DNA of 64,000 nucleotides from Chlorokybus atmophyticus (lineage: Eukaryota > Plantae > Mesostigma and Chlorokybus algae): NCBI GenBank assembly GCA_009103225.1, contig RHPI01000277.1, forward strand, positions 82,652 through 146,651, read 5' to 3'. Both the position numbers and the translations under genes were made by a program. This document shows positions 11,239 to 57,400 of the stretch, piece by piece. The notes under the pieces were generated by a model that searched no databases, was not told the origin of the DNA, and saw only the letters and a list, made by a program, of their open reading frames with translations. The first letter of the stretch is position 1, and each line of letters begins with the position of its first letter.

Positions 11239-11297
<59 letters not shown>

Positions 11298-13810
11298 NNN
11301 NNNNNNNNNNNNNNNNNNNNNNNNNNNNNNNNNNNNNNNNNNNNNNNNNNNNNNNNNNNNNNNNNNNNNNNNNNNNNNNNNNNNNNNNNNNNNNNNNNNN
11401 NNNNNNNNNNNNNNNNNNNNNNNNNNNNNNNNNNNNNNNNNNNNNNNNNNNNNNNNNNNNNNNNNNNNNNNNNNNNNNNNNNNNNNNNNNNNNNNNNNNN
11501 NNNNNNNNNNNNNNNNNNNNNNNNNNNNNNNNNNNNNNNNNNNNNNNNNNNNNNNNNNNNNNNNNNNNNNNNNNNNNNNNNNNNNNNNNNNNNNNNNNNN
11601 NNNNNNNNNNNNNNNNNNNNNNNNNNNNNNNNNNNNNNNNNNNNNNNNNNNNNNNNNNNNNNNNNNNNNNNNNNNNNNNNNNNNNNNNNNNNNNNNNNNN
11701 NNNNNNNNNNNNNNNNNNNNNNNNNNNNNNNNNNNNNNNNNNNNNNNNNNNNNNNNNNNNNNNNNNNNNNNNNNNNNNNNNNNNNNNNNNNNNNNNNNNN
11801 NNNNNNNNNNNNNNNNNNNNNNNNNNNNNNNNNNNNNNNNNNNNNNNNNNNNNNNNNNNNNNNNNNNNNNNNNNNNNNNNNNNNNNNNNNNNNNNNNNNN
11901 NNNNNNNNNNNNNNNNNNNNNNNNNNTCCCGTCTCTGTCTCACCGCTTGGTGTAGAGCTCTCGCGCAAGTCGGGGGCTGCGCAATGCGAGCCCGGTGGCC
12001 CGTAGTGCTAGTGTTACTTCTACAACTACAACCACTAGTGGTATACCTGCTACGTAGCAGGAGTATCATTCAACGAATGATTGTTAGTAGTGTACATCAA
12101 ATGCAGGACATGCATGCGCATGCATAACGTGTAGTTCAGTCAGCAATGTACTACCAGTGATGGACAGGACTGGAAGTAGTAAAATCCGTACTGCGACTAG
12201 TAGTTAAGCCTGTACTACTAGTCGTAGGCTGATCATCCTCAGAGTGCTGTACTACTAACAGCAGGCTGCAAGGGGCTTCCATCATTCTCCTCATGAACCT
12301 AGTCATATGCAACATCAACGTGCAGGGCAAGGATCTCTCTCGCTCTCTTACATGCAGGCAGGAAGCGCGGCCGACTGTAACACAGCATTGCCGCTACGCC
12401 TCCTCGTCATGATGATCCCAGAATGGAGTGCGACTGAGCTGCTGCGAGGCTCGCGATGATGACCTCATTATGGCCATGTTATCCATACTTGTATGGCAAC
12501 ATGCCGCAAGCCGTCGACCTGTGGCTTTTGATGATTAGACTGGAAGCTTGACGCTGGTTTGATGCATGTGCACGCGTGTGTCTGCAGTGACAGCCCAACC
12601 AACAAGGATGTACTAACTGTAGAAAGGGGGCAGAGGTCTTAGTCGTTCGACAACTAAGATCTGTTGATGGTTCTGCTTTGCGGACATTGCGACTACGTGG
12701 GCTACCTGCTCTGTTGCACCTTACCGCTGCTTTTCAACACACACGCACGCACACATGCATGGCACGCGTGCGCATGGGCTACCCTGTGTGTCTGAGGCAT
12801 AGGGGGGGGCACGGTGTCTGGCATGCACACGCACTCGTAGCCCAGAGGGCGTCAGGCTCGCACACTGCAGAGACACTGCATGGCGCAGCACTGCCGCACC
12901 ATCGCTCACCTGCCAGGCAGTGCGAGGTGAGGTTGTTCTGAGTCTGGCAAAAGGCAAGGTAATTTCGGGTGCAATCCCAAGACTCTTATGCACAGCACTG
13001 TACATGAAAGTTGCTGCATACCGCCCGCCCCCCCCNNNNNNNNNNNNNNNNNNNNNNNNNNNNNNNNNNNNNNNNNNNNNNNNNNNNNNNNNNNNNNNNN
13101 NNNNNNNNNNNNNNNNNNNNNNNNNNNNNNNNNNNNNNNNNNNNNNNNNNNNNNNNNNNNNNNNNNNNNNNNNNNNNNNNNNNNNNNNNNNNNNNNNNNN
13201 NNNNNNNNNNNNNNNNNNNNNNNNNNNNNNNNNNNNNNNNNNNNNNNNNNNNNNNNNNNNNNNNNNNNNNNNNNNNNNNNNNNNNGGTGGTGTGTGCCCC
13301 CCCCCCTTCCTCCCAAGCGCGCGCGCGCGTTCACACACGAACGCATGCAAAAGTACACTGGCTGTTCAACGGCTGACACAATGGTGTGCTGCGGCACTAG
13401 TGGTGATTGTTGGTGGCAGAGAGTGGAGAGCGCTGGGCTTTCAAAAGACAAAGCCATGACTGGAGCGTAGTCTTCGCATCTGGCAATTACAATAAAAGCC
13501 GTGCCCAAGTGGGTGCGGTCGTGTTGTGTTTAAGTGAAGCACATGAAAGCAGCGGACAAGTCCAAGTGTAGTCTAAGTGAGGTTGCCAGCAGCTACAACA
13601 TGGGAGGAGCGAGGGGGCGTGCGTGCATGGTTGTGTTTGTGAGCGTGTGCGTGCAGGTGTGTAGACTCTACACTTAGTGACTGATGTAGCTGTAACAGGC
13701 GTGCGTGTGCATGGGTGGGTGCACGCGCGCATGCTGTGTTTGGGGGAGGGGGNGCTCATGCGCTTCAATGTGCGTGTATGTATATATATATAGGCCTTCA
13801 CCTTACAGCG
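8865..13810 (+). pseudogene. Array copy 2 (decayed LRR-like gene)
   Basis: Landmarks at 9086, 10700, 11051, 12275; fragments such as QLQLVDRWEALLVPTGLLRLS; no intact ORF. Confidence 0.55.
11200..11297. repeat. (GA)n microsatellite running into a gap
   Basis: Direct observation. Confidence 0.95.
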
Positions 13811-16182: not shown

Positions 16183-16221
16183 TAACAGTCTTACTAGCGT
16201 TGAACGCTAGTAAGACTGTTA
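16183..16221. repeat. Perfect inverted repeat, 19-bp arms, 1-nt spacer; overlaps an 8-bp direct repeat TAGTAACA (16180-16187 and 16227-16234)
   Basis: taacagtcttactagcgtt-g-aacgctagtaagactgtta; other copies read straight through without this insert. Confidence 0.95.
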
Positions 16222-16308
16222 GACTGTAGTAACACAGCTGTTTGCTGATGGTCCAACTGAGGGAGCAATGTTGGAAGCTGCAGATTGTGGCTCAATGACA
16301 GCTAACTG

Positions 16309-16359
16309 TTGATGTCAGCTGATAGTAGCACAATTTGTGCTACTATCAGCTGACATCAA
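16309..16359. repeat. Perfect inverted repeat, 25-bp arms, 1-nt spacer
   Basis: ttgatgtcagctgatagtagcacaa-t-ttgtgctactatcagctgacatcaa; private to copy 3. Confidence 0.95.
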
Positions 16360-17885
16360 GCTGCCGTTAAATTATGGCAAGTGCTGCTCCGATAGCATAC
16401 AACACAGCTGTTTGAAGGTGTGTGACCGAGCTTGCCCCATCCTACGCACATGATTTGACCACTGGTTGCCTTTCGTGGGTGTAAATTGTGTTTACGCTCG
16501 CAAAGACGCATGATGGTTCTGGTTGGCAGGTTCTGCATTGTAACTGCAACACCTTGTCTGTTGCAGGTGTACAGGTGCACTGCAGGCAAGTGCTTACGCA
16601 GGCTTGAAGCCCTCTGCAGCATTGCTAATGCTTCACCGTTACCAACCACTGGTAGCACTGAACGCAACAACTGCTTACTTCAGAAAGTAACGAATGGCAG
16701 ACACCGTACTAGTTGGCTTGCTGATGGGTTGTTGGTGACCTTCTTGACCCCCTGCCACTCGTATTGTGCGCAAAGAGAGTCAGAGTTCAGGTTGCTTCAT
16801 GCTTGCGTCAGCCTTCACATCTGCAGCAAGTCCTCCCACAAGCTTTATGCGAATCGTTGTACTCGCCTGGCAATGAGGAATGGCTGGGCGTCTGTTCAGC
16901 GTTATGGTTTGGCAACACCATTGCGGGAACGCTTGATGACCAGCTCACCTGGGCCACGTCGCAGGTGTGCAGGTACTACTGCTAGGAGTAGAGCCGTGAA
17001 GTGCTAGCAGTGTACTTCCAACGCGCACATAGTCTCTCCACCCCCTTCCATGTCCGCACAGAGTCATCTCCGCCTTCCCCCCTCCCCGAAATACACACAT
17101 TGCACGCACGCATGCACGCACTGGCATACACATTGCATACATGTGCACGCGTGCACACATAAGACAGATTTTGAGAAAGAGAGGAGAGGGGGAGGGGGAG
17201 GGGNNNNNNNNNNNNNNNNNNNNNNNNNNNNNNNNNNNNNNNNNNNNNNNNNNNNNNNNNNNNNNNNNNNNNNNNNNNNNNNNNNNNNNNNNNNNNNNNN
17301 NNNNNNNNNNNNNNNNNNNNNNNNNNNNNNNNNNNNNNNNNNNNNNNNNNNNNNNNNNNNNNNNNNNNNNNNNNNNNNNNNNNNNNNNNNNNNNNNNNNN
17401 NNNNNNNNNNNNNNNNNNNNNNNNNNNNNNNNNNNNNNNNNNNNNNNNNNNNNNNNNNNNNNNNNNNNNNNNNNNNNNNNNNNNNNNNNNNNNNNNNNNN
17501 NNNNNNNNNNNNNNNNNNNNNNNNNNNNNNNNNNNNNNNNNNNNNNNNNNNNNNNNNNNNNNNNNNNNNNNNNNNNNNNNNNNNNNNNNNNNNNNNNNNN
17601 NNNNNNNNNNNNNNNNNNNNNNNNNNNNNNNNNNNNNNNNNNNNNNNNNNNNNNNNNNNNNNNNNNNNNNNNNNNNNNNNNNNNNNNNNNNNNNNNNNNN
17701 NNNNNNNNNNNNNNNNNNNNNNNNNNNNNNNNNNNNNNNNNNNNNNNNNNNNNGGGGGAATGACTCTTGTGTGCGAGCGCAGTTCGCACTGTGTTCCCCG
17801 CATTCGTTTGGAGTTCTTGCGCACGTACGGGGAACGCACTGCGCATTGCACGCCCGGTGGTTCAGTACTACCAGTCCGGTACTAC

Positions 17886-18174
17886 CAGTAGTGCTAGTAT
17901 TACTAGAACTACTACTGCTAGCAATAGCAGTAGTACTACTGTTGTCAGTACTATCAGTATCAGTGCCTCTGCTACCAGTGTTATTACGAGTAGTAGTGGC
18001 ATTACTGATAGTACAGCCATTAACAAACAGTAGTGCTAGTAGTACTAGAACTACTACTGCCAGAAATAGCAGTAGTACTACTCATATCAGTACTACTAGT
18101 ATCAGTGCCTCTGCTACCAGTGTTATTACTAGTAGTAATAGTGGCAACACTAATTGCACAGCCATTAACAAAAC
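17886..18174 (+). repeat. ~143-bp imperfect tandem duplication within the AGT/ACT-rich tract of copy 3
   Basis: cagtagtgctagta..tactagaactactactgc...tatcagtgcctctgctaccagtgttattac...acagccattaacaaa occurs twice in tandem. Confidence 0.85.
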
Positions 18175-21100
18175 TACCACAACTTCATGTACAGCATCTT
18201 GCATGGGGCTTCCATCGTTGTCATGGTTGTATATTGTTCTCGCAACATGAATGCAGGGGCAAGAAGCTCTCGCTTCAATGCGGACAAGAGGCCCAGCCAA
18301 CTGCGACACCGCATCATACCACAGCCTTGGCATCCCAAGGCGGAATGCACCTGAGCGTGCTGCAAGGCTTACAACGAGCGCCCTGGCCATGTTGACCTGC
18401 AAAGGACGAATGCAACCGTTGCGAAGACAACAGCAGGTACGAGCAGCAGCCAGCGGGTTGTGCATGTAGTAAGGTAAGCTGAACCCTCTTGCCCAAGGTT
18501 TATTGTCGCCCTGATTGTGCTGTCTCAACCTGCCAACACCTGCATGACAACATGCAGCAACAGCGGCCGCCACAACCACGTCTATTGTAGACTGGAGCTT
18601 GGTATTGTCCTGTGAGCGTTCTCCATTGTGTGTACACGCGTGCGTCTGTAGTCAGCCTGACCATCAATAATGTGTGCACTGCAGAAGGACGGGTGTCGTA
18701 GCTATTGTTGATCGCTTGGTGTATGTTGCCACTTTGTTAGTGACCTGTTCTTGCACCTTACTGCTGCTTCTGACACGTGCGCGCACACATTGTTGCCGCA
18801 ATGGGCACGCGCGCACGCACACACGCACATTCGAGCACGTACATGCAAATGTGTGTGGCTGATCATGATCGCATCTAGGCATTTGGGTCAGTGCAAAACA
18901 CCTGACGCACATGCAGGCGCCGCGCATGTGGCACACGCACGCATATGCACATGCATACGCACTCGCGCGCTGCAGGGACGTACAATGCGCCACACAACCG
19001 CACTACCGAGTGAAGTTGCTGCATCATGCACACTCAGACACATACCAGCTGTCGACACAAAGTGGCACATTGCACTCGTCTGCTGCCATAGCAGGGTAGT
19101 TGTGGTTTGCGTGGCCTGCAAAAGCGGTGGTGGGGTCTTCAAAAAAACGTACAACTGCAATCGTAGCCTAGTGTTCGCATGACTAACACAAGACACGACC
19201 ACAACAGTTGTTGCAAACCTTGTTGTGGTCGTGTTGTGTACGGCTGAAGCACATGAGCAGCCGACAAGCCTAAATGAAGTTTAAGCAGCCATACAGCCCA
19301 GCCGCACAAGTTGTGGCTTAAACGTTCGCCAACACCATGTCAATCACCGCCGCAAGGTGCATTGCCGCCGGGTGCGTAAGCACGCCAGCATCACAGCTTG
19401 CCGCAGCCCTAGAATGCTCCCAAGTGTCCTTGGAGTGTATATGAACCTCCAAGACTATTGTGTAGAGGGGTGTGGGCGTGGGTGTTGGCAACACACACCC
19501 ACCCACGTCCGAGTTGCATTCGGCAGAGGGAAAGGCGCCGCGCGCGTGCCTCGGGGGAGGGGGGGGGGGGGGCAACACGCGTGTACAGGATAAAGGGAAG
19601 GATTTTGCTTGTGCCAAGTCCATATGCACACTAGTTGTGTAAGGGTGGGTGTTGGGTGGCCGTATGTACAGGATATATGACGTGCTATTAGACACACGCA
19701 TGCAATGCATCACAACTACTCAAGCATTACATGCACACTAGTGTACATTTCACCGTTGTGTGAGATGGGCATGCGTGGGCGCATGTGTGCATGCGTGTGT
19801 TCATTAGCATGCGCACAATGTGCGTGCGGATATGTAGACTCTACAATGTAGCTTTGAGAAGGCGTGGGCATGGATGGGGTGGGTGCACACATACGTGTGG
19901 CTGCACATGGGCATGGGGGTGGTGTGTGGTTGGTTGGGCGCGGGGGGATGCGTGTGTGCGTGTGTAGATCTTACAGACGTAAGCATCATTTCAGTGCGCA
20001 TGCGCATGCCCGCGCACAGATAGGTCACCAACTAGATTTGTGAGTGCGCGTGCCTGTACGCATGTGCACGCGCTTGTGGCCCCCACTCTAAAATTACTAG
20101 TACAGCAACACCGTCACGCAAAGCTATGTTTAGTTATCCATGCTTATCATACTGCACATGCATACACGCAGTGTGCAAGCACACAACTACACAGCAGCAG
20201 CCGTCAGCACATTGTCCGCTTCCACCGTTGGCGCTGCCGTCTGGACTGGTCCCCAGCTTAAGACTGTCGCCACGACCGCCGCCCCACGGTGTTGGCACAA
20301 TATCGTATTGCATAACAACTCTAATCAAACGGTATGTATTGAAGCGATCGTAATAATAGCATATGTCAGCCGTTGATTGCAAGAGTTTTAAAGTTCTCAA
20401 AGCTTGTCAATGGTCGATAAATATATTAAAAACGTCTTGCATTGATCAGGTGTTGCAATAGTTCACAGATTAACCACGCATCATTAAGTAACTCCTTTTA
20501 TATGTAATCCTAAGCGCTAGCGCTGTAAGGGAACACTGAATGTTACAACATTGCTGCAGTTCATTATAAGTATGAAGTGCAAAAGTAATTATTGCAATAA
20601 TACGCCGCGTTGTTTTGCAATGTATTATTGCAAGTGATGAAGTTCATAAAATGTCAAGCATATTCAATGCAGTATGCAGCTCACCAACGAATTTAATTCC
20701 CCTCAACAATGCCCGTCGATGAGGTACTATGCTTCGAACGTCTTCAATATCATAATCACATCATGTCACCAAATTGAACACTTTGCAATTGATCGACTCT
20801 GGTGACAAAATGTGTATATTAACAATGTACATCAACGGACTGGTTCACAACAAACTTGCCGTCATGCATAAAAGGGCTCACACATCGTGTGAGCATTCAA
20901 TAACATATAAGCCTTAATTGGGTATTAGTATTAAGTAAGTCAAATATTAGAGTTAATATAAAGAAAAAAAGTGCTCGTGTGTTGCAATCTTCTGATTTCA
21001 ATATGTAATTGCGGCGATAAATTGTAAAAATATGCATTAAGACAATATGCATAGCGAATACGACATAGGAGCTCACGTGCACATCTGCCAAAGTTGAGCT

Positions 21101-23220: not shown

Positions 23221-23266
23221 TGGTGCGTATTGGCCCTTTTCACGTGAAAAGGGCCAATACGCACCA
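23221..23266. repeat. Perfect 46-bp palindrome (23-bp arms, no spacer) at a deletion junction
   Basis: tggtgcgtattggcccttttcac|gtgaaaagggccaatacgcacca; most of the right arm is the normal unit sequence (aaggccaatacgcacca), and the left arm replaces ~100 bp present in other copies. Confidence 0.97.
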
Positions 23267-24019
23267 CGTAAGGCCCTGAGGCGACAAGCTGCTGCACGTT
23301 GCATTTGCATAGAACGCAACACGCGGCCATAGAACTGCTGTGGAACTTGGTGCCTGGGTCAGTGTCTGCTACCCATATTATCAACGCTGCATGGTGCTTG
23401 CTGACTCCGTTGGACTTGAGCGCATGGTCAGTAACGAGCGTTACGATGCAGGCTGCTACTAACTTGCCGCTGTCCTTGGTATCTGCAGCACGTACTTCCA
23501 CGAATATCGCAGAAAAGCACTGGTCGCTTGGAGGAGTTGGGTGTGTTCAACGCTATGATTGGGCGACACCATTGCGGGAACGCTCAAGGACCAGCTCACC
23601 TTGGTCACCTCGCAGGTGTGCAGATACTGATACAAGGAGTCAATTTGGGAGAAGTGCTCGTAGTAGCAGTGCATTTTCCACGCAGGCACACACGCGTGCA
23701 CACATAGTCTCTCCACCCCTCCACGTCCGCACACAGTCATTGAGAGCGCCTGCATGAACGTTGCACCATCACCATGATGAAAAAGCTAAAATGCCCTGCA
23801 GGATGCCGTTCTACTACTAGTGCTGTCCATTGCTAGTCGTATTAGCGATACTACTAGTACTACTACTACTACTGCTACTAGTACTTTGAGAGTTCGAATG
23901 CTAGTAGCACTACGACGGGCCATGCATACTACGGGCCGCCGGGCGTGCCGTGTGCTCCTCACTTGCGCAAGAGCTCCGCACATGTGGCAGGAAGCGCAGT
24001 GCCAACTGCGATGGCACAC

Positions 24020-24296
<277 letters not shown>

Positions 24297-28739: not shown

Positions 28740-32880
<4,141 letters not shown>

Positions 32881-35162: not shown

Positions 35163-38100
35163 AGGAGCAAGTCGCTTGCGATTCATAACCGTCCCCAGAA
35201 GGGAATACAAACCCTAACTCCGAAGCTGCTTGCGCTGCGGCAGTGCGCGAAAGCAGCTTGTGAGTGGGCAGTGTGGGGCGTTGCGTCACAACTTGGCGTG
35301 GGTCGGTGGCCAGTCGCTGGCGTGCACAGCTTGGGGGCCGCAGCGCTCTCAAGGATGGAGGCAGGCAGAGTGGGTCAGAGGCGGCTGTATGCATGAGAAG
35401 CACAAGCTGGTTGAGGAGGGGTTAGCTGCAGGACAAGATGGAGGCGCTGCTTGTATCAACTTACTGACTCATATGACATGGGCAACGCTTAGTTTGATGT
35501 CAAGCTAACATTAATTGCTTTGGACCAAGCGTGTATGGTCACGCAGCCTTCTGTTGCGTGCCTGTGGGCATGCTTGTGGCTTGGTTCAGTTGTTACCATT
35601 GAGTGGTAGTTTGACTTTGGCTGTATATGCTTGGGAGCCTCTGTCCGCTTGCAGTAGACCTTGGTGTCTGCTCGCATTCTGCGCCACAGTGTTTTTGCCT
35701 GCCCTAACCTTTGACCACAAGCTGCCTTGGCAGCAGCAGACAAGGCACCTTGTGCCTGTATCTGAGCAGATCCACTCGCATAGATCCGTTAAGCTAACTC
35801 TTACTGCAGGTGTGCCACAGTTGCAATGCAAGGTGCTGCCATAGCACTGTGCATCGCGGCCATCAAGCTGTCTTGGTCTCGAATGTGCGTGGTGCAGCGA
35901 GGAGTGCTGCACTGCGTGCAGAGATGAGTGGCGGCTCATTGTGCTGAGCTACAATAGGGGGTGTCAGGCAGGTGAGGTGGGGCGGGGGAGGGAGTGTGTG
36001 GGGCTCAGTGTGTGCCACAAACTCGGCAGTGAGTGTGCACTAAGTGCCCTGTTGCGTCTGTTGTACACAGACGCGAGTTACGCACGTGCATGTGTATGTG
36101 CATGTGGCTGAGTGCTTGGGCGCACGTGTGTGGGAGGTTATGCAGTGCACTAAGGTCAACTGAATGCACTGCCGCATGCTGCAGCAAACTTGGAGGCAAA
36201 ACCATCGGCGCACATTGACGTGCCTGCTGCCCCAGGTGCTTTGCATATACGGCTGCGCTGATCCCAAAAGCCATGCACACCTGCGTACACACATGCACAT
36301 GACCAGCTGGCAAGGGTTTGGAGTAAGTGGTAAAAGCTATCCTAATCAGACAGCCGCTGTGAGTTGTGACGCTGCCATTATTGCTCAGCAGTGATTCTGT
36401 GTAACTGCATGCGAATACCTGCCAACACAGTTGAGCTGACTGCAGCATTGCTGTGTTGTGTGCGCTGGCGCTACAAAAATCATGTTTGACAACTGTGTTA
36501 CTGACACGGTTGGTAACACAGCTGTTGACAGGTGTCCGACTGCAGATGGTAATGTTGAAGCTGCAAACTGTGAATGGAATGGCAACCATGTAACGCACAA
36601 GCACATGCACACCCGCCCAAGCGTGTATCAATATGCGTGTGCGCAAGTGCACCCACACACACACAGGTTTAATCACTCCACACTTAGATGTACACACTCC
36701 ATTGTGCGTGTGCACACACTACGCAGCAACACATGCCATTCACTGACATGTGCTCGCATTGCAGGCTTTGATCTGACCCCGCAACAGGTCGCGGACGCGC
36801 TCATGATGCGCCTGCGCAGGCTTACCTCAATCGAAGCTGGCAAGGTCAAGGCAGAGTTGAAGGTCTCGAACTCCAAAAGTAAACAACCTCAACAGCCTAT
36901 CGTCGGAAGAAAAGCCACGTGCTGGAGGTAACACGCATAGTACAAGTGGGCATTGATGCTGATGGAGATTAACAGTGGTTTCTAAACCACACGTGTGCAA
37001 TCCTTGATTAGGTCATGAAGTCAGTCGCTTTGAAGCTGAAGTGGAAGTACAGCATACCTAAAAAATCCAAAGTGCAGAATGTCCTTGTCATCCGGGATGA
37101 CAGCGAGCTTGGGGAGTGAGCATTGAAAACAGCTTCGTCGCCCTGAGCAAGCGCGGGTACATTAAGCGCGTGCTGGCAGACACCTTGCGACAGCAGCGCG
37201 TGGCACGTGCGGGAATGCGGCCGCAATGATGGCATGAGTCACCTGTGCGCGATGAGCAAACAGATGCGCTGCTGTTCTTCAGGTGTGGTCACCTGTGTGC
37301 AGTAAGTACGTCTTTTCCAGAGCACACACAGCTGTCGGCCTCACGCGTGCAGTCATGGCAGACACAAGGGCTATGTGTACTTCCTGTATGGCCATCAGAC
37401 CCAAAGACCTCGTGCGCGTCTTCTGGTACACCTGTTTTCTCCAGGCAGATTGACATGTTTCTGGCTTGGATTGGCTGTGTGTTGTGAGTTTGTATGGCTG
37501 TGAGCTCGTACATTTTTGTTATTGCGTGCATGCGTGCGCTGCATGCATATCAATATGCGTTGTATAGGGGTGTCTGGCTGATAAACATCCCGCGGACAAC
37601 ATTGCATGCTTACGGTGTCATCTTTAGAATTGGTGGCTACGCTAGTCATGGTGATGACCAACGGCTTCATCAAGCGCCTCGCAGTTGCAGGACATCCGCT
37701 CTTCGGGTCTGGTGGCTTTGCAACTGAATAATGACGACGAGCTGCGGTGGGTCCAGTCTGCCTATGATGGCAATAGCATTGTCATCGGCGCGTCCGACGG
37801 ACAAGGCATCCACCTCACCATTGATGAAGATCATGTAAGCTTCTTTGGCAACACATCCAGGTATCATTGCCAAGCACACATTACTGTCAGTGCGCGTGCA
37901 TGTGCATGCTTAGTGGGACGCGTGCGCGTGTACATGCGCGCTTGTGCGTGTGGCATGCGCGCCATGCATCAAGGAGCCCACATCACTTTGATGGACATCA
38001 TCCCGCAGGCTGCAATGCCTGTCTAGCGTTCTCTTTTCCCAAGCTAACTGCAGCACAACTGAGGTAGCATACACTACAGCTATGTAAAGGTGCGAGCGAG

Positions 38101-41100
38101 CTTGCCCCATAGTTGGCAATTTCTGCATTGCAACACTGTGCGCATGGTACAGGTGCGTGCAGGTAAGTGTCTACGCAGGCTTGAAGCCTTTGGTAGCCTT
38201 GTCAATGATTACGCTGCTGGCTGGCGCTGAACTCAACAACTGCATAGTGATAGGGGTGGCAGACACCACCACTGGATAGCTTCCTGATGTGGTATCGGTG
38301 CACTTCTTGCGGCCCTGCCACGTGCACTTGTAGTTCGCCCCAAACCCATTGCCTTTGCAACAGATAGTTGGCGCAGACAGAGCGTTCAGCAAGGCCAATA
38401 CGCATCACGTGAGGTGACAAGCTTCTGTGCTTTGCACTTGCAGAAAACCCAGGACACTGCCAATATACTGCTACGTTACTTTGTGCTACAGTGTGCCTGG
38501 CTACCATACAGCAATGCTGTAGCGGTGCTTGTCGACTCGAGTGGCATCATACGCAAAGAGCGTCCACATGCAGGCTGCCAGTTCCTTTTTGCTATCCTTC
38601 GCATCTGCAGTAAGTCCTCCCACCAACTTTATGAGAAGCGCTGCTGGTCACTTGGCATGGAGGAGTCGCTGGGCGTCTGTGGCGCAACGATTCTGTGACA
38701 CCATTGCCGTAATCCTGGAGGACCAGCTCGCCTTGGCCACCTCGCAAGCGTGCAGGTACTACTACTAGCAGTAGATCTGTGAGCAGTGCTAGTAGTCGTA
38801 GCGCTGCAGTTGCCACGCGCGCACGAATGCACGCATAAAGACAGAGAGCTCGAGAGAAAGAGAGAGGATGTGTGTGTGTGTGGGTTTGGTTTGGGCGGGG
38901 GGGGGGGGGGGGGGGGGGANNNNNNNNNNNNNNNNNNNNNNNNNNNNNNNNNNNNNNNNNNNNNNNNNNNNNNNNNNNNNNNNNNNNNNNNNNNNNNNNN
39001 NNNNNNNNNNNNNNNNNNNNNNNNNNNNNNNNNNNNNNNNNNNNNNNNNNNNNNNNNNNNNNNNNNNNNNNNNNNNNNNNNNNNNNNNNNNNNNNNNNNN
39101 NNNNNNNNNNNNNNNNNNNNNNNNNNNNNNNNNNNNNNNNNNNNNNNNNNNNNNNNNNNNNNNNNNNNNNNNNNNNNNNNNNNNNNNNNNNNNNNNNNNN
39201 NNNNNNNNNNNNNNNNNNNNNNNNNNNNNNNNNNNNNNNNNNNNNNNNNNNNNNNNNNNNNNNNNNNNNNNNNNNNNNNNNNNNNNNNNNNNNNNNNNNN
39301 NNNNNNNNNNGGGGGGGGGGGGGGGGGGGGAGAGAAGTTATATGTGTGTAAGCGCAGTTGCACTGCGCTTGCGCTCTCGCACTCATAAAGCTCTTGCGCA
39401 AGTGCGGGGAACACACGGCACGTCCGCTAGCTCGTTGCAGTGCTAGTAGTACTAGAATTACTACTGCTAGGACCAGGACTATCCGTCATAACAGTAGTAC
39501 CGCTACTACCAGTGTTACTACTAGTAGTGATGGACTGTACAAGTAGCAGTATAATTCAGTGGTACGACTAGTAGCACAGCATCTGGTGAGAGGCCTCCAT
39601 CATTCTCATCATGGCATTGTTTTGTGCAACATCCATGCAGGGGTAAAGAGCTTTAAGCTCCGAGAGCGGCGCTCTCACATGCAGACACAAGAGGCCTAGC
39701 CGACTGCAACACGGCATTGCCGCCACGGCTTTGTCATCTCAAGGCGGATGCAAGCGTGCTGCGAGGTACAAACCCTGAGCTCGCCATAGCCATGTTGACG
39801 TACAAAAGACGAATGCAACCGTTCCAAAGACAACATCACGTACAAGAGGCGCAGCTCAGCGTGCGCCAATAGCACACAGTGCGAAGGCAAGAGCAGCTGC
39901 TACAAGGCTGTTGCGTCATCAGACCGCAAGCTGATGGCCGTCCTGCTATCGTTTCGCTCCAACTGCTGGTGCGTGTGCATGCGTGCATCTGGAGTCAGTG
40001 TGATCAACCACGATATACTGTCACTGTAGAAGTGGGACTGAGGTCTCAGCCGTTGTTGTTGGTTCTGCCTTGTGCACGGTGCGACTGTGCAGGCTACCTG
40101 TTCTGCCGCACCGTACCATTGCTTATGACACGCATGCTGCAGTGGGTGGCACGCACGCGCACATGCCAACTGTGTGTCTGGTCGCACCTGGGCATCTGGG
40201 GTGAGTGCACAGCATCTGGTGCATGCGCTTGCACCGCGCACACGCGCAATCTACAGGGATTGCATGGCTCGTCACCACCGCACCACCGCTCGCCTGCACG
40301 GTGAGGTAATCCCAGGATCCGCAGGGAACGGCAATGTACAGGTATTCTTGCCGCACCATGCCCGCACGCATGCAGGAACACACTGGCTGTACCAAATAGA
40401 CGCATCACATTGGGGGATGCGTGCATGTCTGTCGGTGTGGCTGTGTGTGTATGCCAGGGAGGAGCGCGGGGCATGCGCGTGCGCAAGTATGCAGCTGTGT
40501 AGAAAAGCGTGGGCGCGGCCGCGGGGGGGGGGGGNNNNNNNNNNNNNNNNNNNNNNNNNNNNNNNNNNNNNNNNNNNNNNNNNNNNNNNNNNNNNNNNNN
40601 NNNNNNNNNNNNNNNNNNNNNNNNNNNNNNNNNNNNNNNNNNNNNNNNNNNNNNNNNNNNNNNNNNNNNNNNNNNNNNNNNNNNNNNNNNNNNNNNNNNN
40701 NNNNNNNNNNNNNNNNNNNNNNNNNNNNNNNNNNNNNNNNNNNNNNNNNNNNNNNNNNNNNNNNNNNNNNNNNNNNNNNNNNNNNNNNNNNNNNNNNNNN
40801 NNNNNNNNNNNNNNNNNNNNNNNNNNNNNNNNNNNNNNNNNNNNNNNNNNNNNNNNNNNNNNNNNNNNNNNNNNNNNNNNNNNNNNNNNNNNNNNNNNNN
40901 NNNNNNNNNNNNNNNNNNNNNNNNNNNNNNNNNNNNNNNNNNNNNNNNNNNNNNNNNNNNNNNNNNNNNNNNNNNNNNNNNNNNNNNNNNNNNNNNNNNN
41001 NNNNNNNNNNNNNNNNNNNNNNNNNNNNNNNNNNNNNNNNNNNNNNNNNNNNNNNNNNNNNNNNNNNNNNNNNNNNNNNNNNNNNNNNNNNNNNNNNNNN

Positions 41101-41400
41101 NNNNNNNNNNNNNNNNNNNNNNNNNNNNNNNNNGGGAGGGGGATGGGCGTGCGCGAGCCATTGTGCGTGCGTGTATGTGTCTAGGTGCGCGTATTGGAGC
41201 GTTGGCACAGGCGCAGGCGTGGGCGCGTAGGTCATGTGGATATGTGGGTAGGTGGGTGCACACGTATGCATGTGTGCACGTCTGGGCAGCAGAGAGGGGA
41301 GGGTTGTCAAGGTGATGCGGTTTGCCCTCAACGTCACAGCTACCATCATTATGATAAACGTGGCTAATTAATGGCATGATGATGTGGTCGCGTGCTATCT
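35163..41400 (+). pseudogene. Array copy 6b (interrupted by GyrA fragment)
   Basis: Landmarks at 35190, 38390, 38741, 39595; telo-box AAACCCTAA at 35209-35217. Confidence 0.55.
36765..38025 (+). pseudogene. gyrA: Intron-containing internal fragment of organellar DNA gyrase subunit A (end of breakage-reunion domain plus first CTD blades), frameshifted
   Basis: Successive exon-like blocks: FDLTPQQVADALMMRLRRLTSIEAGKVKAEL (36765-); VMKSVALKLKWKYSIPKKS..ALSKRGYIKRV..DALLFF (37012-37282); KGYVY..PKTSCASSGTPV (~37365-37442); LVMVMTNGFIKRL (~37635-37680); DIRSSGLVALQLNNDDELRWV (37690-37834, ends cat|gtaagc); ITLMDIIP (~37980-38005). The order matches plant-type GyrA. Stops and frameshifts present; no start, active-site Tyr region or C-terminus. 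Confidence 0.85.
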
Positions 41401-41954
41401 GCGCGGAGGGCACTACTCAATAGTAATCCTAGTAATAGTAGTAGCTACAATGCAATAAACTACAGGTAATCAAGTCATGTTTGCCACCTGTGTGGTTGCA
41501 AGAACACGTGTTATATAAATGTTCAAAATCAGTATTATCTTATATCAATGAAGGTGATGCACTTTTGTGTAGGTACAGGTTATCCTCATCAAGAAATTTA
41601 ATGCTTGAGGATCAAGCCGCTAACGTCACACAATAAGATAATCGAGCGCTTTTGTGGCCAAGAGTTGGTAGCTGAAAAAGTCACATAAAATCTATAGTTG
41701 AAAGTGCAATGGTTTGCATTTTCTATTAGGCGGTTTAGCAAGCTTCATACCAACACGTCATACCCTCGCTTATTGCACGAAGATTTGTGAACGACAAGCA
41801 TGAAGAGAACAACCCCATTGATGGAATGATATATTGCAAGTGCAACATAACTCTTATAACAGAGGTTTAAACCCGCTATTATGGCTGTAAGTCCCACATA
41901 TAAATTGTATTATACAATGGCGGCGTAAGTCCCTTATAAGCCTGTGTATCGCAT

Positions 41955-47810
<5,856 letters not shown>

Positions 47811-50811: not shown

Positions 50812-50906
<95 letters not shown>

Positions 50907-52678: not shown

Positions 52679-53889
52679 ATGGTGACGCATAGGGTAGCGT
52701 TCCGCAAGCTTGGCCGTCCCACCGCGCACAGGCTGTCCATGCTCAAGACCATGGTCTCGCAGGTGCGCGTGTGTGTGATTGTACGTTGGTGTTTGTGAGT
52801 TTTGTCTTGTTGATGGTTTGTCGTTAACCGCAAGCGATCCCTGTGTCTTCACAACCACTCGAGAGACTAGCATGCTAGCAAAATCTGTTTCGTCCTTCAC
52901 TTCACTTCACTGCAAGCAAGGGGCACCTTGCTCCGGTGTCAGTGTGTAACCACTTGGGAGCTTGAGTGAGCCTCGTGTTGTTGTCAATGTTGGCACTCTT
53001 TATCGCATTTGCACGGGTACGAGTGTGACAACACAACACCAGCTTATGTGTCACACAAGCCGCCTCTCAACCAACTTAACAGGAAGTGCATGGGTTTGTG
53101 TGTTGCTGACACAGCCATGCAATGCGTGTGTCGTTGCACCGGTCAATCCATTTGTTGCTTTGCTCGTTGCATTGCCTTTGCTGCTCAGTAGTTAATTGTC
53201 AAAACCAGTCGCACCTAGAGCAGTGGTGTCTGTCAACATTTCAAACTTTGTGTCAGTTATTGTGGAAATGCATAGAGTGAGACAATTCAAGGCATGTGGT
53301 TTTGTTGGCTGGAGGTTGACGTGTGTATTGTTGTTGCGTGTGCAGTTGATCGAGCACGAGAGGATTGAGACGACGGTGGCGAAGGCGAAGGAGCTGCGTC
53401 GCGTGGCGGACCAGGTGGTGACGATGGGCAAGGAGGGCACGCTCGCCGCGCGACGACGCGCAGCCGCCGTCGTGCGAGGAGACCAAAACCTGCAGAAGCT
53501 GTTCACGGTCCTTGCCGATCGATACAAACACCGAGAAGGTGGGGGCGTGCACACACACACGCGCACGCACATGTGCACATGCACACCTGTCAGTGCGCAC
53601 GCGCTGTGTGTGACACACATGCACGCAAGCACAAACATGCATCGCACACTCAGGCATACACATGCACACGCACAAGCGGTGATTGACACACGCACGTGCA
53701 GGCGGGTACACGCGCGTGCTGCAGACGGGTCAGAGGCAAGGGGACGGCGCGCACATGGCGTACATCGAGTACGTCGATCGAGACGGGGAGCTGCGGCCGG
53801 CGCGACCACCGCGACCACCGTCCATGATGCAACACACGTCCATACTCCCGCCCGCAGCCCAGCCATCAACATTACCATCGAGCCAATAG
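52679..53889 (+). CDS. RPL17: Ribosomal protein bL17, mitochondrial type, 3 exons (52679-52762, 53346-53538, 53702-53889)
   Basis: [28 protein letters not shown]|[65 protein letters not shown]|[36 protein letters not shown]; GT-AG introns, phases consistent; no plastid transit peptide, and the C-terminal EYVDR.GELRP matches plant mitochondrial bL17 (bacterial rplQ family). Confidence 0.95.
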
Positions 53890-54448: not shown

Positions 54449-57400
54449 TCACTTTTTGACGCGTATGCGCTTGGCGACCTCCCTGATGTTGGAGAAGATG
54501 CGCTCCCCGACGAGGTCCTTGCGGCCCGCGGCAACCCTGGCGATGTCCTGCAAGAGGCCGTGGTTGCCCATGATGTCAATGTGGTCTCCGGAGCGCGTGC
54601 CACGCCCCTCCACGATGACGTTGGTCGGCGCCACGTGCGGAAACTCCCTCTCTATAACCTGTTGGGCAATGCGTTGAGGGAAGACGTTCGTCGTAGTATA
54701 CAAGTATACATCGACTAAATGTGAAATCCTGGAGCAGGACAGGAAATGTGCGTGTAAGCCTACGTGCGTCTATAGGCGTGCGTGCGTCTTTTTACCTTCA
54801 TCTTGTGTGGGTTGAACCTGCTGGGCGGTTGCCACGCGTGCGCACACATGTACTCCCCGCTAATCAATGGCACCGTGACATCACCAGCACCCAACCTCGT
54901 GCCACTCTGCAGGCACAATTACACGCATCAAACGCACACCCACACGCGCACGCGCATCAGCAAACCCAAAACTCATCTTGCCACAAACAGTCTCAACATT
55001 CTCCCTTACGTCCATTTTTTTGGCGGGGTCGGTGGCGCTCGTGTTGATGGACAAGCGCACCTCCCGGAACGTGCCGTTCGCGGTGGGCAGCACCGTCATG
55101 TCGTACGCAAACCCGCGCTCCGTGTCAATGCCCACACCATTGAAGCAGTACATCGTCGTCGTCGGCGCGTCCGGCAACCTACGCAATGAGTGATACACGC
55201 TCTATCTAAGTTGTGATCCACAACGACTTGTGTTTGTACTTTACAAGCACGTATGTTTGTGCTCGGACAATCAATCTACAATGCGCATGTGCGTGCGTAT
55301 GTGCGCGCGCACACGTACATGGAGCAATCTGACACAAATCACATGTGTTTACGACAGCCACAGCTTCCATAACAAGTGCACTTACTTGGTTTCGAGGGCG
55401 TTGCCCCAGTATCTCGGGTGGTTGTACTCGTCAGCCGCGAGGTCAGCACCCTCGGGTGCGGCCCCGTGGCTGTACTCCGCGTCCATGCGCTCCATAAACG
55501 CAGGGGCCGCCTCGCGAAGCAGGTCGAGGGCCTCGTTCACCGTCAGCGTGTTCTGCTTCGCTATCTCTGCGGGGGGAGACAACGAGGTGTTAATGTGTTT
55601 TCACGCACACTCACGTGTGCACGTGTATAATGTGGTGGTGCGCTCACTGTCAAATGTCTCGACGGGGATTTTGATGCCGGCCTCGTGCTTCGCCTCGGAT
55701 CCAGGCTTGTGATCACCGTACACAGTCGTATCCTGTATAGTTGCAACGACAACAACAACTTGTTACAAATTAGTTGACGAACCAAGAGGCGTAAACGGAA
55801 ACTGCTAGACTGTCTTCACATAGGCTCACACGTACACACGCAAGCGCTCACATGCACACGCGCACCTGAGTGGACATGTCAATGTGGCTGCCGAGCGGCT
55901 TCCCCTCCTTCTTCTCTTTCGGCGACGGCGTGTGATGCACCGTAAACTGTGCACCACCAAACCACATAAACACGTAAACCAACATCATCCCCCGGTACCA
56001 CCTCAGGCAGAACCAGCGTGCACGCATCGCCACATAACCACAACACATCCCCCCCTCACCTGCATGAACTGTCCGTAGGTGATGTCGGGCGCGGTGCGGT
56101 TCTTCCCGTCCTCAGCAACATCGTCCGCGGCGTAGTCCATATCGCCCCACACGGCGTTCCCGCCTTTGGGCAGCATGCTCGGCACAACACCAAACGTGCG
56201 AAACAACTCACGCACCTGCCAGGGGTAATCATCATGAGGACAGAGCTTGTTTGGGGTAGCGTGCGAGTAGTAGTAGCTTACTGTTGTTGCGGCGAAGTTG
56301 GTGACGAAGTCTGCGATGAACGGCGTGGCGGCGAGGACGTTGGCGGTGTCGCGCATGTCGCCGCTGAGGAGCGTTGTGACAGACTTCAACGCACCTGTCG
56401 ACGAACAACAGGGTTTACCCGATGATAGGCACGCGCGCGCTCGTGTGCGTACGTGGGTGTGTACACGCGTGCTTGCATGCAGGTGTGTGCCATGTGCTCG
56501 TGCATGCATGCGTGCATGCGTACCTGTGTGCGATTGTGTACGTGGCGTGTGTACGTGTCTGTGTGAGTGCGCGCGCACACATGCGCATATGCACCATAAC
56601 GCTTGTGTTCGTGTTGAGAAAAAGAACACATACCCAAGTATGGTGGGCCGATGTTGACAACAGCCTCAATGTGTTCCTCCACCCACTTGGGCCCGCCATT
56701 GCCACCGATGCGAGGACCTCCCGCACGCGCCTGCAACCCAACACTTGCTGTTACTTAGTGTTACACAATCAGAGCACAACATGACAAAGGGCGTAATGCG
56801 TGTTTATACCACAGCGTCTGGGTCGGCTTCGACCCATTTGAGGAAGAACAGCGTGGTGAGGGCGCCAAGAGAGTGCGTGTACATGACCGTGCGCTCGCCG
56901 TGGATAAGCTTCGACACTTCGATCTGGTTCTTCAACCGCGTGTAGTATCTGTCTCGCACCTGGCAGAGAACAACAGGCATGCTTGAAGCAACCGATGGTG
57001 CACACATACAAATCCACACACGAACATGCGCGCGCGCATGCGCACACACATACACGCGCATGCGCACACGCACACGCACACGCACACCCACATCCACATC
57101 CACACACGCGCGTACGTGCATGCGCGCGCGTACTCAAACACACACACCCACCTCCAAGTTGGTGAGTGACAGCCGCCAGTCCATCGACGCCATGTGCATG
57201 TTGCTTTCATCATACCCTGCACGAGCGCTTCCCACAGTGAATACAAGTACAAGTACTCATTGCGCGAGCGCGTGTACACAACGACAACCCAACACAACAG
57301 TACCGAGCGCTGCGAGGGTTTCGATGATGGGTGCCCAGACGTAGTACATGGCGATAAAGTAGTCGCCGGAGCCGAGTCCCGAGGCGGGCCGCAGCTTGAT

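Follow-up and report, generated by a model that had tools for sequence, protein, structure and literature searches.

A decayed, intron-bearing GyrA gene fragment in one unit of a Chlorokybus tandem array, and its possible origin by filler-DNA repair

The insert and the array that holds it

The stretch of DNA analysed here (64,000 nt, hereafter the window) contains an array of diverged tandem repeats with a unit of roughly 6.5 kb and an estimated DNA difference of 25–40% between units. Copy 6 of this array carries a 1.46-kb block for which self-BLAST of the whole window found no second occurrence. An earlier note had described an insert of about 1.45 kb between two array flanks; the insert is real, being single-copy by self-BLAST, and the flanks are contiguous in copies 1, 3, and 5. 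The features of the site and of its empty counterparts are as follows.

3327–3346, no strand assigned: empty site of copy 1, with GGCTCAGCGG and CAGCTAACTG contiguous
16289–16359, no strand assigned: empty site of copy 3 with a palindrome; flanks contiguous at 16289–16308, insertion point between 16298 and 16299 intact
29886–29903, no strand assigned: empty site of copy 5, equal in length to copy 1, with substitutions only
36430–36572, no strand assigned: left flank, belonging to array copy 6 and homologous to other copies, with AACTGTG at its end
36573–36582, no strand assigned: aberrant junction decamer AATGGAATGG, replacing the consensus GCTCAACGG in the alignment of copies
36583–38039, forward strand: inserted block of 1457 bp (1453 bp with CAAC at 36583–36586 counted as flank), single-copy in the window
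38040–38130, no strand assigned: right flank, where the array restarts with CAAGCTAACTGC

BLAST anchors the left flank at 36572 to 43532 in copy 7 and at 36574 to 22844 in copy 4, and the end of this flank (36566–36582) reads AACTGTG AATGGAATGG. The target was altered at the junction, with 9 nt replaced by AATGGAATGG and a further 17 nt lost 20 nt to the right; the latter loss, relative to the other copies, falls between 38059 and 38060. Further into the right flank, near 38109, the core alignment has a 91-column gap in copy 6 alone. The junction decamer with adjoining flank matches 36732–36743, inside the insert, in inverted orientation at 11 of 12 positions (estimated chance expectation about 0.06–0.12), a resemblance whose meaning is only suggestive. 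Since copies 1, 3, and 5 keep empty sites, the GyrA insertion is a derived event confined to copy 6; we rejected the converse, an ancestral component of the unit lost from six copies, as the empty sites are precise.

According to the earlier note, such an insertion into a live leucine-rich repeat (LRR) gene would create integrated-domain fusions, analogous to plant NLR proteins carrying integrated domains (NLR-ID). This idea found no support in the surrounding array. Pfam searches of the 150 longest stop-free array segments and of 101 unit-specific spacer segments returned no family at E ≤ 0.01, and no LRR was found even at E ≤ 1 in these two sets or in the open reading frames next to the site. 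Array copies match each other in all six frames, stops included, and the frames of co-located open reading frames are not conserved. A codon-phase test on the core alignment gave some uneven windows without a coding-like pattern, in pairs of copies that are not independent of one another, and an Rfam scan of the window returned no matches. Judged from its sequence, the array is an old non-coding tandem repeat.

GyrA content of the insert

GyrA homology in the insert is colinear, lies on the forward strand, and comprises four exon remnants running from the coiled coil to the C-terminal blades. As reference we used P0015, a 525-aa C-terminal half of GyrA with Pfam PF00521 and six PF03989 repeats; searches were made exon by exon. 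All of the following features are on the forward strand.

36583–36764: CA/TG-rich non-coding lead without GyrA homology; an acceptor-like AG directly precedes the first homologous residues
36765–36927: exon remnant 1, about P0015 aa 78–133 (tblastn), covering the coiled coil and the end of the GyrA breakage-reunion domain
36928–37011: spacer 1, 84 bp, GTAACA...TTAG, read as an intron; as we read the reference, its residues continue across the spacer
37012–37483: exon remnant 2, about P0015 aa 134–282, covering the linker and first C-terminal blade(s)
37484–37626: spacer 2, 143 bp, GTGAGT...TTTAG, read as an intron
37627–37861: exon remnant 3, C-terminal blade, P0015 aa 267–354 (tblastn E 4e-11), with 85% identity to P0001
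37862–37951: spacer 3, 90 bp, starting GTATCA, acceptor eroded, read as an intron
37952–38023: exon remnant 4, start of the next blade (GMRAM...MDIIPQAAMPV), aa 165–196 of the GyrA fragment P0008
38024–38039: 16 unassigned nt, TAG CGTTCTCTTTTCC, separating remnant 4 from the right flank; a transposon terminus would not fit in them

The evidence for this gene identity varies along the insert. By tblastn, P0015 aa 78–110 matched 36758–36856 (42% identity, E 4e-4), aa 167–199 matched 37116–37214 (E 0.036), and aa 294–354 matched 37679–37861 with E 4e-11 in a 2-kb region and 5e-9 in the whole window. In remnant 2 a continuous HSP links aa 167–282 to 37116–37472, with a PF03989 match at E 0.004; a second PF03989 match in the insert reached E 0.017, and both weak matches lie under the gathering score. 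Remnant 4 is the weakest of the four (tblastn E 0.018 in a small search space). The best PDB matches of the insert pieces were GyrA chains: all 17 matches of the coiled-coil piece were GyrA chains or GyrB-GyrA fusion constructs, at weak values (E 0.14–0.93), and the C-terminal piece matched the GyrA C-terminal domain 3uc1 with E 0.002. Together the remnants extend over about aa 78–378 of the C-terminal-half reference, roughly 300 of about 900 GyrA codons, with three introns. On this similarity we assign the insert to a nuclear gene for the bacterial-type DNA gyrase subunit A, the organelle GyrA.

The fragment is decayed. Remnant 1 has a frameshift near 36860 (its PDB GyrA match corresponds to S. 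aureus residues 407–437), remnant 2 a frameshift near 37110 and an in-frame TGA at 37227–37229, and remnant 3 a frameshift near 37680, read as an 8-nt deletion. The three frameshifts and the stop codon make the insert a dead copy of a nuclear gene, and within it there is neither a complete open reading frame nor the N-terminal catalytic domain of a working GyrA gene. With these lesions and non-coding repeat surroundings, the fragment has no function here. The frameshifts also account for six or seven open pieces in the insert, and the earlier count of six GyrA exons with introns thus stood as to GyrA and introns but not as to number: there are four exon blocks, three full spacers, and a partial upstream intron, the lead being probably the 3' portion of a GYRA intron that closes with ...attgcag.

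Since intervening sequences were kept and a poly-A is absent, the fragment was copied as genomic DNA. None of the marks of a processed (retro-)pseudogene was found, all three GT-started spacers being retained, in a GyrA alignment that is unbroken apart from them, and neither end of the insert having an A-run, and the proposal of a DNA-level capture rather than retrotransposition was borne out.

A second copy of the fragment

Outside the window there is a second copy of the decayed fragment, P0001 (Chlat1 907, gene model Chrsp108S01352). It is about 13% diverged from the insert, with 75–85% identity in three blocks, and degenerate stretches are common to both; P0001 has no other match in the window. 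We estimate the DNA difference between the insert and this sister copy at only about 5–6%. As a word-search query, P0001 found only itself among proteins of 0.55–1.75 times the query length. The long matches of the representative search (P0002, P0005, P0010, and P0014) are not GyrA and were discarded: P0010 had no significant Pfam match, and the other three are adhesin, fibronectin-III, and WD40 repeat proteins.

The L17 gene at 52679–53886 of the window encodes the Chlat1 model Chrsp108S01353 at 100%, and its gene-model number is consecutive with that of the sister copy. Because of this complete L17 match and of the N-gapped short-read scaffold structure (PMC7027972), we assign both to the same genome, and on these sequence grounds window and sister copy belong to scaffold 108 of Chlorokybus CCAC 0220. 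The adjacent gene number had suggested that P0001 might be an orthologue belonging to a different Chlorokybus species. We rejected this, as L17 shows 100% identity over 136 aa where the nearest other species differs by 2.5–2.9% in protein (PMC8611356, Table 1), and as the window is N-gapped in the manner of the CCAC 0220 assembly. At least one "protein" of the published Chlorokybus set (Chlat1 907, Chrsp108S01352) is consequently a model on a dead GyrA fragment.

As the second copy shares the same decayed features on the same scaffold, the donor or the recipient was probably already a pseudogene. A direct, one-off copy from an intact GYRA locus is not supported, given the decayed sister copy on the same scaffold.

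Origin of the insert and comparison with known systems

We looked for the ends of a mobile element around the insert. No inverted pair was found at its ends, and there is no clear target-site duplication, the flanks GAATGG and CAAGCT being unduplicated. A doubtful 4-nt CA(A/G)C repeat flanks the insert (estimated chance probability about 0.05); this might be either a short target-site duplication or microhomology, and we counted it against transposon-free repair. Reading the junctions on both strands gave neither a 5'-TC nor a 3'-CTRR-hairpin in either orientation and no A-T target, and the 3' 146 nt of the insert fold no better than shuffled sequences (z = 0.58). No Rep/helicase or other protein domain was detected in 1–48.5 kb of the window. 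Since only 16 nt separate the GyrA homology from the junction, there is no room for a terminal element at the right end. The terminal inverted repeats and fixed-length target-site duplication of Pack-MULE, hAT, CACTA, and PIF elements were likewise absent. The earlier observation of no evident inverted repeat or duplication holds apart from the doubtful 4-nt repeat, and the search for Helitron or Pack-MULE ends proposed in the earlier note found none.

The reading that we tentatively favour, while giving it slightly less than an even chance, is filler-DNA repair independent of any transposon, in which a pseudogene copy nearby would have been either the template or the product. The array would have amplified and diverged first, and a double-strand break would have struck copy 6 later; the broken ends would have been nibbled and then repaired without a transposon, about 1.46 kb of unrelated genomic DNA being copied or ligated in as filler, either by non-homologous end joining (NHEJ) with captured DNA or by SDSA-type templated synthesis. 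The filler would be a piece of the nuclear, bacterial-type GYRA starting inside an intron and ending inside an exon, and its template was probably not the working GYRA but more likely the decayed pseudogene Chrsp108S01352, if copying did not run in reverse. What the sequence shows is the insertion, its derivation from GyrA, the kept spacers, the missing transposon ends, and a sister copy, whereas break, repair pathway, and copying direction are what we infer. The altered target and the arbitrary breakpoints (one in an intron, one in an exon) count for repair. Transposon hallmarks are absent and target bases were lost or rewritten, the combination that marks filler DNA, for which fragments of genes arising via SDSA are described by Wicker et al. 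2010, as cited in PMC3445842. Against this reading counts the size of the insert. Typical filler DNA measures tens to hundreds of bp, and 1.46 kb is at the large end.

The same fragment as cargo of a Helitron or other DNA element, with ends eroded or non-canonical for an algal family, seems unlikely. At least two copies of the decayed fragment exist, as a mobile carrier would give, and a weak hairpin (5-bp stem) with CTAG lies at 38005–38027; this CTAG, however, is 13 nt from the junction, inside GyrA-derived sequence, and by our estimate about 30% of random sequences would have a CTRR among their final 20 nt. The missing 5' TC, A-T target, inverted repeats, and duplication, GyrA sequence up to 16 nt from the right end, the lack of a Rep/helicase domain in 1–48.5 kb, and the lack of a similar insert in the window all speak against such a carrier. 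Segmental duplication or conversion, in which one capture was followed by duplication on the scaffold of a larger block including array flanks, we consider a shade less probable again; it draws on the location of both copies on scaffold 108, on the consecutive numbering of the sister copy and L17 models, and on their estimated DNA difference of about 5–6%, against 25–40% between array units. Least probable of all, in our judgement very much so, is an assembly artefact, in which a small contig with the GyrA pseudogene was misplaced within the array during scaffolding and the gap filler closed the joints. The window comes from a short-read scaffold whose gaps leave 15 N-runs (2992 N) in it, in an assembly made with SOAPdenovo plus GapCloser (PMC7027972), the junction bases are odd on both sides, and further perfect palindromes elsewhere in the array may be artefacts too; besides that of copy 3 at 16309–16359, palindromes lie at 16183–16221 and 23221–23266. 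The nearest N, however, is more than 880 bp from both junctions, the array restarts almost exactly at its stopping point, unlike in a random mis-join, and an 85-mer graph would not confuse array copies as diverged as these.

A more specific form of repair had been proposed in the earlier note, namely a recurrent break site. The indel test on a core-only MAFFT alignment of array copies (4091 columns) did not bear out the recurrence: gap intervals of 10 or more columns number 118, spread through the core at about one per 35 columns, control windows equalled or exceeded the event count of the site in a fraction of 0.09–0.70, and the nearest other single-copy insertion lies 17 columns off (P about 0.12). 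Indel density at the site is thus not above that of the rest of the unit, the outcome that the earlier note had named as refuting its proposal. Individual changes described there fared unevenly. The 25-bp palindrome in copy 3 exists (16309–16359, perfect, with 25-nt arms, 11 nt right of the equivalent insertion point), although in a gapped short-read scaffold a perfect palindrome could be an assembly artefact; the copy 2 deletion does span the site (86 columns); copy 7 is indeed 16 nt shorter and rewritten there, while copy 5, also described as scrambled, has the length of copy 1, no indel, and clustered substitutions only. Ectopic templated insertion as such fits the missing transposon ends and slight target damage, and it is the recurrence that falls away.

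A sequence-specific fragile site in the unit, with recurrent breaks and a patch after each (the GyrA insert of copy 6, the copy 2 deletion, the copy 3 palindrome), is accordingly improbable. Three or four independent changes within about 40 columns and the 11-nt spacing of the palindrome and GyrA insertion points speak for it, whereas the position is no outlier among the frequent core indels and copy 5 has no indel. Were the position truly fragile, which we regard as equally improbable, different error-prone routes would have patched it: fold-back synthesis in copies 3 and 4, yielding their perfect palindromes, deletion in copy 2, and in copy 6 kilobase-scale templated copying from the neighbouring pseudogene. 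One of the earliest-diverging streptophytes would then preserve naturally formed traces of both polymerase-theta-like and SDSA-like repair. Both the break hot spot and the domain-fusion route in immune-type genes thus lose their support at this locus.

Among known systems, the likeness to NLR-ID is only abstract, in that ectopic DNA in a repeat-rich gene could add a domain; here the array has no LRR, NB-ARC, or other domain and no conserved frame, and the insert is broken, making a fusion protein impossible. Pack-MULE and other capture by elements with terminal inverted repeats also moves intron-bearing gene fragments to new sites, but our insert lacks such repeats and an 8–11-bp target-site duplication. 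Helitron fragment capture, as reported for maize and other plants in the part of the literature cited in PMC3445842, resembles it in DNA-level exon-intron capture, absence of a target-site duplication, and multiple copies, and differs in that the insert has no TC/CTRR-hairpin ends, A-T target, or surrounding element, and in that its target was altered. The closest parallel is filler DNA or SDSA "gap patching" in plants, which, as far as Wicker, Buchmann & Keller 2010 is represented in PMC3445842, likewise places intron-bearing fragments at non-collinear sites. In plant cases including the maize p1 locus (PMC2686159), target-site duplication and terminal inverted repeats are also absent, target damage is small, and what results is a pseudogene; a further likeness is that the donor probably comes from the same region of the chromosome. 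Our case differs in its host, an early-diverging streptophyte alga, in its target, a non-coding tandem array, and in its donor, apparently a dead copy. This type of scar, gene-fragment filler, is already known from plants; since sister copies of the array preserve the empty site, Chlorokybus provides a clean case of transposon-free DNA-level gene-fragment insertion, an indication that the "gap-patching" route described in grasses goes far back in the green lineage.

The insert in copy 6 and its GyrA content

The window carries a tandem array of seven diverged copies, repeating about every 6-7 kb and 60-78% identical pairwise across a conserved core of 2-3 kb, the cores being separated by unit-specific spacers and N-gaps. 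Self-comparison of the window showed that the core of copy 6 is broken by a block without a match elsewhere in the window, about 1.45 kb long according to anchors to copy 7 (36572<->43532 and 38059<->43568). In the multiple alignment, copies 1, 3 and 5 read GGCTCA(A/G)(C/T)G(G/A) and then directly CAGC at this site, the flanks being contiguous as CAGCTAACTG in copies 1 and 3, while the order in copy 6 is AACTGTG, AATGGAATGG, CAAC, insert, CAAGCTAACTGC. Since copies 1, 3 and 5 are uninterrupted, the insertion is a derived state specific to copy 6. About 9 nt of target were replaced at the left junction in the alignment, and copy 6 lacks a further 17 nt at a distance of 20 nt beyond the right junction, followed by a 91-column gap near 38109.

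GyrA pieces of the insert were searched singly, exon by exon, by reference. The best external reference was P0015, a 525-aa C-terminal half of GyrA (PF00521 positions 295-431 and six PF03989 blades), with which the insert is colinear on the + strand. The aligned pairs are 36758-36856 with aa 78-110 (E 4e-4), 37116-37472 with aa 167-282 (one weak, unbroken HSP), 37606-37677 with aa 267-290, and 37679-37861 with aa 294-354, the last at E 4e-11 locally and 5e-9 when the whole window is searched. The next blade, from the GyrA fragment P0008, aligns to 37952-38023 (E 0.018, the search space being small). The pieces also match GyrA chains in PDB, and PF03989 matches them below threshold.

Features of the insert
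36583-36764, +, putative partial intron, CA/TG-rich, no GyrA homology
36765-36927, +, exon remnant E1, frameshift near 36860
36928-37011, +, spacer 1, GTAACA...TTAG
37012-37483, +, exon remnant E2, frameshift near 37110, TGA at 37227
37484-37626, +, spacer 2, GTGAGT...TTTAG
37627-37861, +, exon remnant E3, frameshift near 37680, read as an 8-nt deletion
37862-37951, +, spacer 3, starting GTATCA
37952-38023, +, exon remnant E4, the weakest assignment of the four exons
38024-38039, +, 16-nt tail without GyrA assignment

Because the reference protein is read as continuous across each spacer, spacers 1-3 are read as behaving like introns. The insert was copied at the DNA level from a nuclear gene encoding a GyrA of bacterial type, the organelle enzyme in plants (PMC4751362, PMC2845627), and the fragment is dead. 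The earlier note had described an intron-containing organellar GyrA fragment with six exons; its GyrA origin and retained intervening sequences stand, but four blocks were counted instead of six. The 13-mer TATCAATATGCGT occurs exactly at 36626-36638 and 37548-37560, in two different putative introns (an estimated ~0.02 expected by chance).

A sister copy and the scaffold

When E3 was queried against the full protein library, the sole close match (85% identical) was P0001, a 106-aa Chlorokybus atmophyticus record of EukProt (jgi/Chlat1/907, Chrsp108S01352). P0001 aligns to 37215-37304 (83%), 37685-37903 (75%) and 37938-37988 (76%), has no match in the window beyond the insert, and shares with the insert a shortened, non-GyrA-like blade-1 stretch and a stop after ...TSL. 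It is a gene model drawn on a second copy of the same decayed GyrA fragment; the 106-aa Chrsp108S01352 "protein" of the published annotation, spliced at incidental sites, is probably an annotation artefact.

An organellar ribosomal protein L17 gene with three exons lies at 52679-53886 (+). Its exon at 53.2-54.0 kb, used as query, retrieved P0141, which is Chrsp108S01353 (Chlat1 911) and has 136/136 residues encoded at 100% in window exons 52679-52765, about 53340-53510 and 53725-53886. Fifteen N-runs, 2992 N in all, are spread across 2895-63982 of the window (largest 11298-11926, 40535-41133 and 17204-17753), which marks it as a gapped short-read scaffold and fits the way strain CCAC 0220 was assembled, with SOAPdenovo/GapCloser (PMC7027972). 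From the L17 match, the N-run structure and the 2.5-2.9% protein difference of the nearest other Chlorokybus species (PMC8611356, Table 1), we assign the window to scaffold 108 of the CCAC 0220 assembly. The S01352 locus is thus a paralogue of the insert located elsewhere on this scaffold, beyond the window, and, if numbering is positional, it would lie upstream with no gene model between it and L17.

The insert and S01352 differ by about 13% in amino acids, an estimated 5-6% or so in DNA if neutral, which would make their divergence far younger than that of the array (25-40%). As they appear to share decay features, one copy would derive from the other, or both from one pseudogene, which makes direct copying from the working GYRA gene an improbable origin for the insert.

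Overlapping long "ORFs" at 10938-12069, 17141-18250 and 40094-41413, together with the low-GC bins there, are N-run artefacts. A 94-C run (50813-50906), of doubtful length in a short-read assembly, stands where the array region gives way to the GC-rich genic region. Downstream of L17, four stop-free segments at about 55800-57200 (-) match LCAT (PF02450, best E 6e-10), indicating a putative multi-exon LCAT/PDAT-family gene.

Variability and coding capacity of the array

With the insert removed, the conserved cores of the seven copies gave an alignment of 4091 columns, in which 118 gap intervals span at least 10 columns each, roughly one every 35 columns. When distinct events were counted in 40-, 60- and 100-column windows centred on the site, 0.09-0.70 of control windows reached its count, depending on settings. 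Single-copy insertions of at least 20 columns number only five besides this one; the copy-3 palindrome comes closest, at a distance of 17 columns (P about 0.12 for a random site so close). The site is variable, yet no excess over the rest of the unit is demonstrable, and the recurrent break site proposed in the earlier note is not supported, on the ground named there beforehand, an indel density no higher than elsewhere.

Perfect palindromes occur at 16183-16221, 16309-16359 and 23221-23266 (the arms measure 19, 25 and 23 nt and lie 0-1 nt apart), in copies that otherwise differ by 25-40%. They are present in the sequence, but in a scaffold built from short reads with gaps they call for confirmation at the level of reads; they are recent scars of fold-back repair or else de Bruijn/gap-closing artefacts. 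To the right of the core, copies 2, 5 and 7 carry long (GA)n runs (11201-11297, 30601-30810, 44576-45112). The run of copy 4 (24023-24296) is the opposite, (TC)n, and its flank of about 59 nt (23964-24022) matches copy 7 in reverse orientation, which suggests a local inversion.

Among the 150 longest stop-free segments within 1-48.5 kb, none matched a Pfam family at E<=0.01 or an LRR family even at E<=1, and LRR families were likewise absent from 101 unit-specific spacer segments and from ORFs beside the site. Matches between copies in tblastx fell in all six frames, with stops; ORFs at equivalent positions had only short in-frame stretches in common, and an Rfam scan of the window found nothing. 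The behaviour of the array is that of non-coding DNA, so domain fusion is not at stake, and the analogy with plant NLR-IDs, which the earlier note drew for a live LRR gene, is left here without LRR or other Pfam domains and without conserved frames.

Origin of the insert

Both junctions were checked, and, consistently with the earlier note, which saw no evident TIR or TSD and called for a check of Helitron and TIR ends, neither an inverted pair nor a fixed-length target duplication was found at the ends. Helitron hallmarks (5' TC, A|T target, terminal CTRR) were likewise absent; a single CTAG is present near the 3' end, 13 nt in from the junction and within GyrA-derived sequence beside a 5-bp stem, and the fold of this end does not improve on that of shuffles. 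GyrA homology extends to 16 nt from the right junction and leaves no room for a terminus. Transposon cargo whose ends have eroded or are unusual, which the second copy of the fragment would favour, is unlikely, and inheritance via a larger duplication is about as unlikely; mis-assembly is very improbable.

The fragment's breakpoints are arbitrary, the left one falling in an intron and the right one in an exon, and the target shows slight damage, features that, together with the missing transposon ends, are those of filler DNA at a repaired double-strand break. The leading, still tentative reading is that a double-strand break in copy 6 would have been repaired with GyrA-derived DNA as filler. 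The aberrant left-junction bases 36570-36581 have an 11/12 inverted match to 36732-36743, 150 nt inside the insert, which might reflect a snap-back templated joint or have arisen by chance (an estimated 0.06-0.12 expected). A 4-nt CA(A/G)C repeat may also be present at both junctions; both observations are weak and carry no conclusion.

If filler repair is accepted, the insert is a real but ordinary repair scar of a kind already known, and the added result is that this scar has a sister copy which public annotation counts as a protein. Movement of gene fragments by SDSA is ascribed to Wicker et al. 2010, as cited in PMC3445842. Filler DNA at repaired breaks is known in plants and often drawn from nearby sequence (PMC2686159), and the insert resembles it in its lack of transposon ends and its damaged target.
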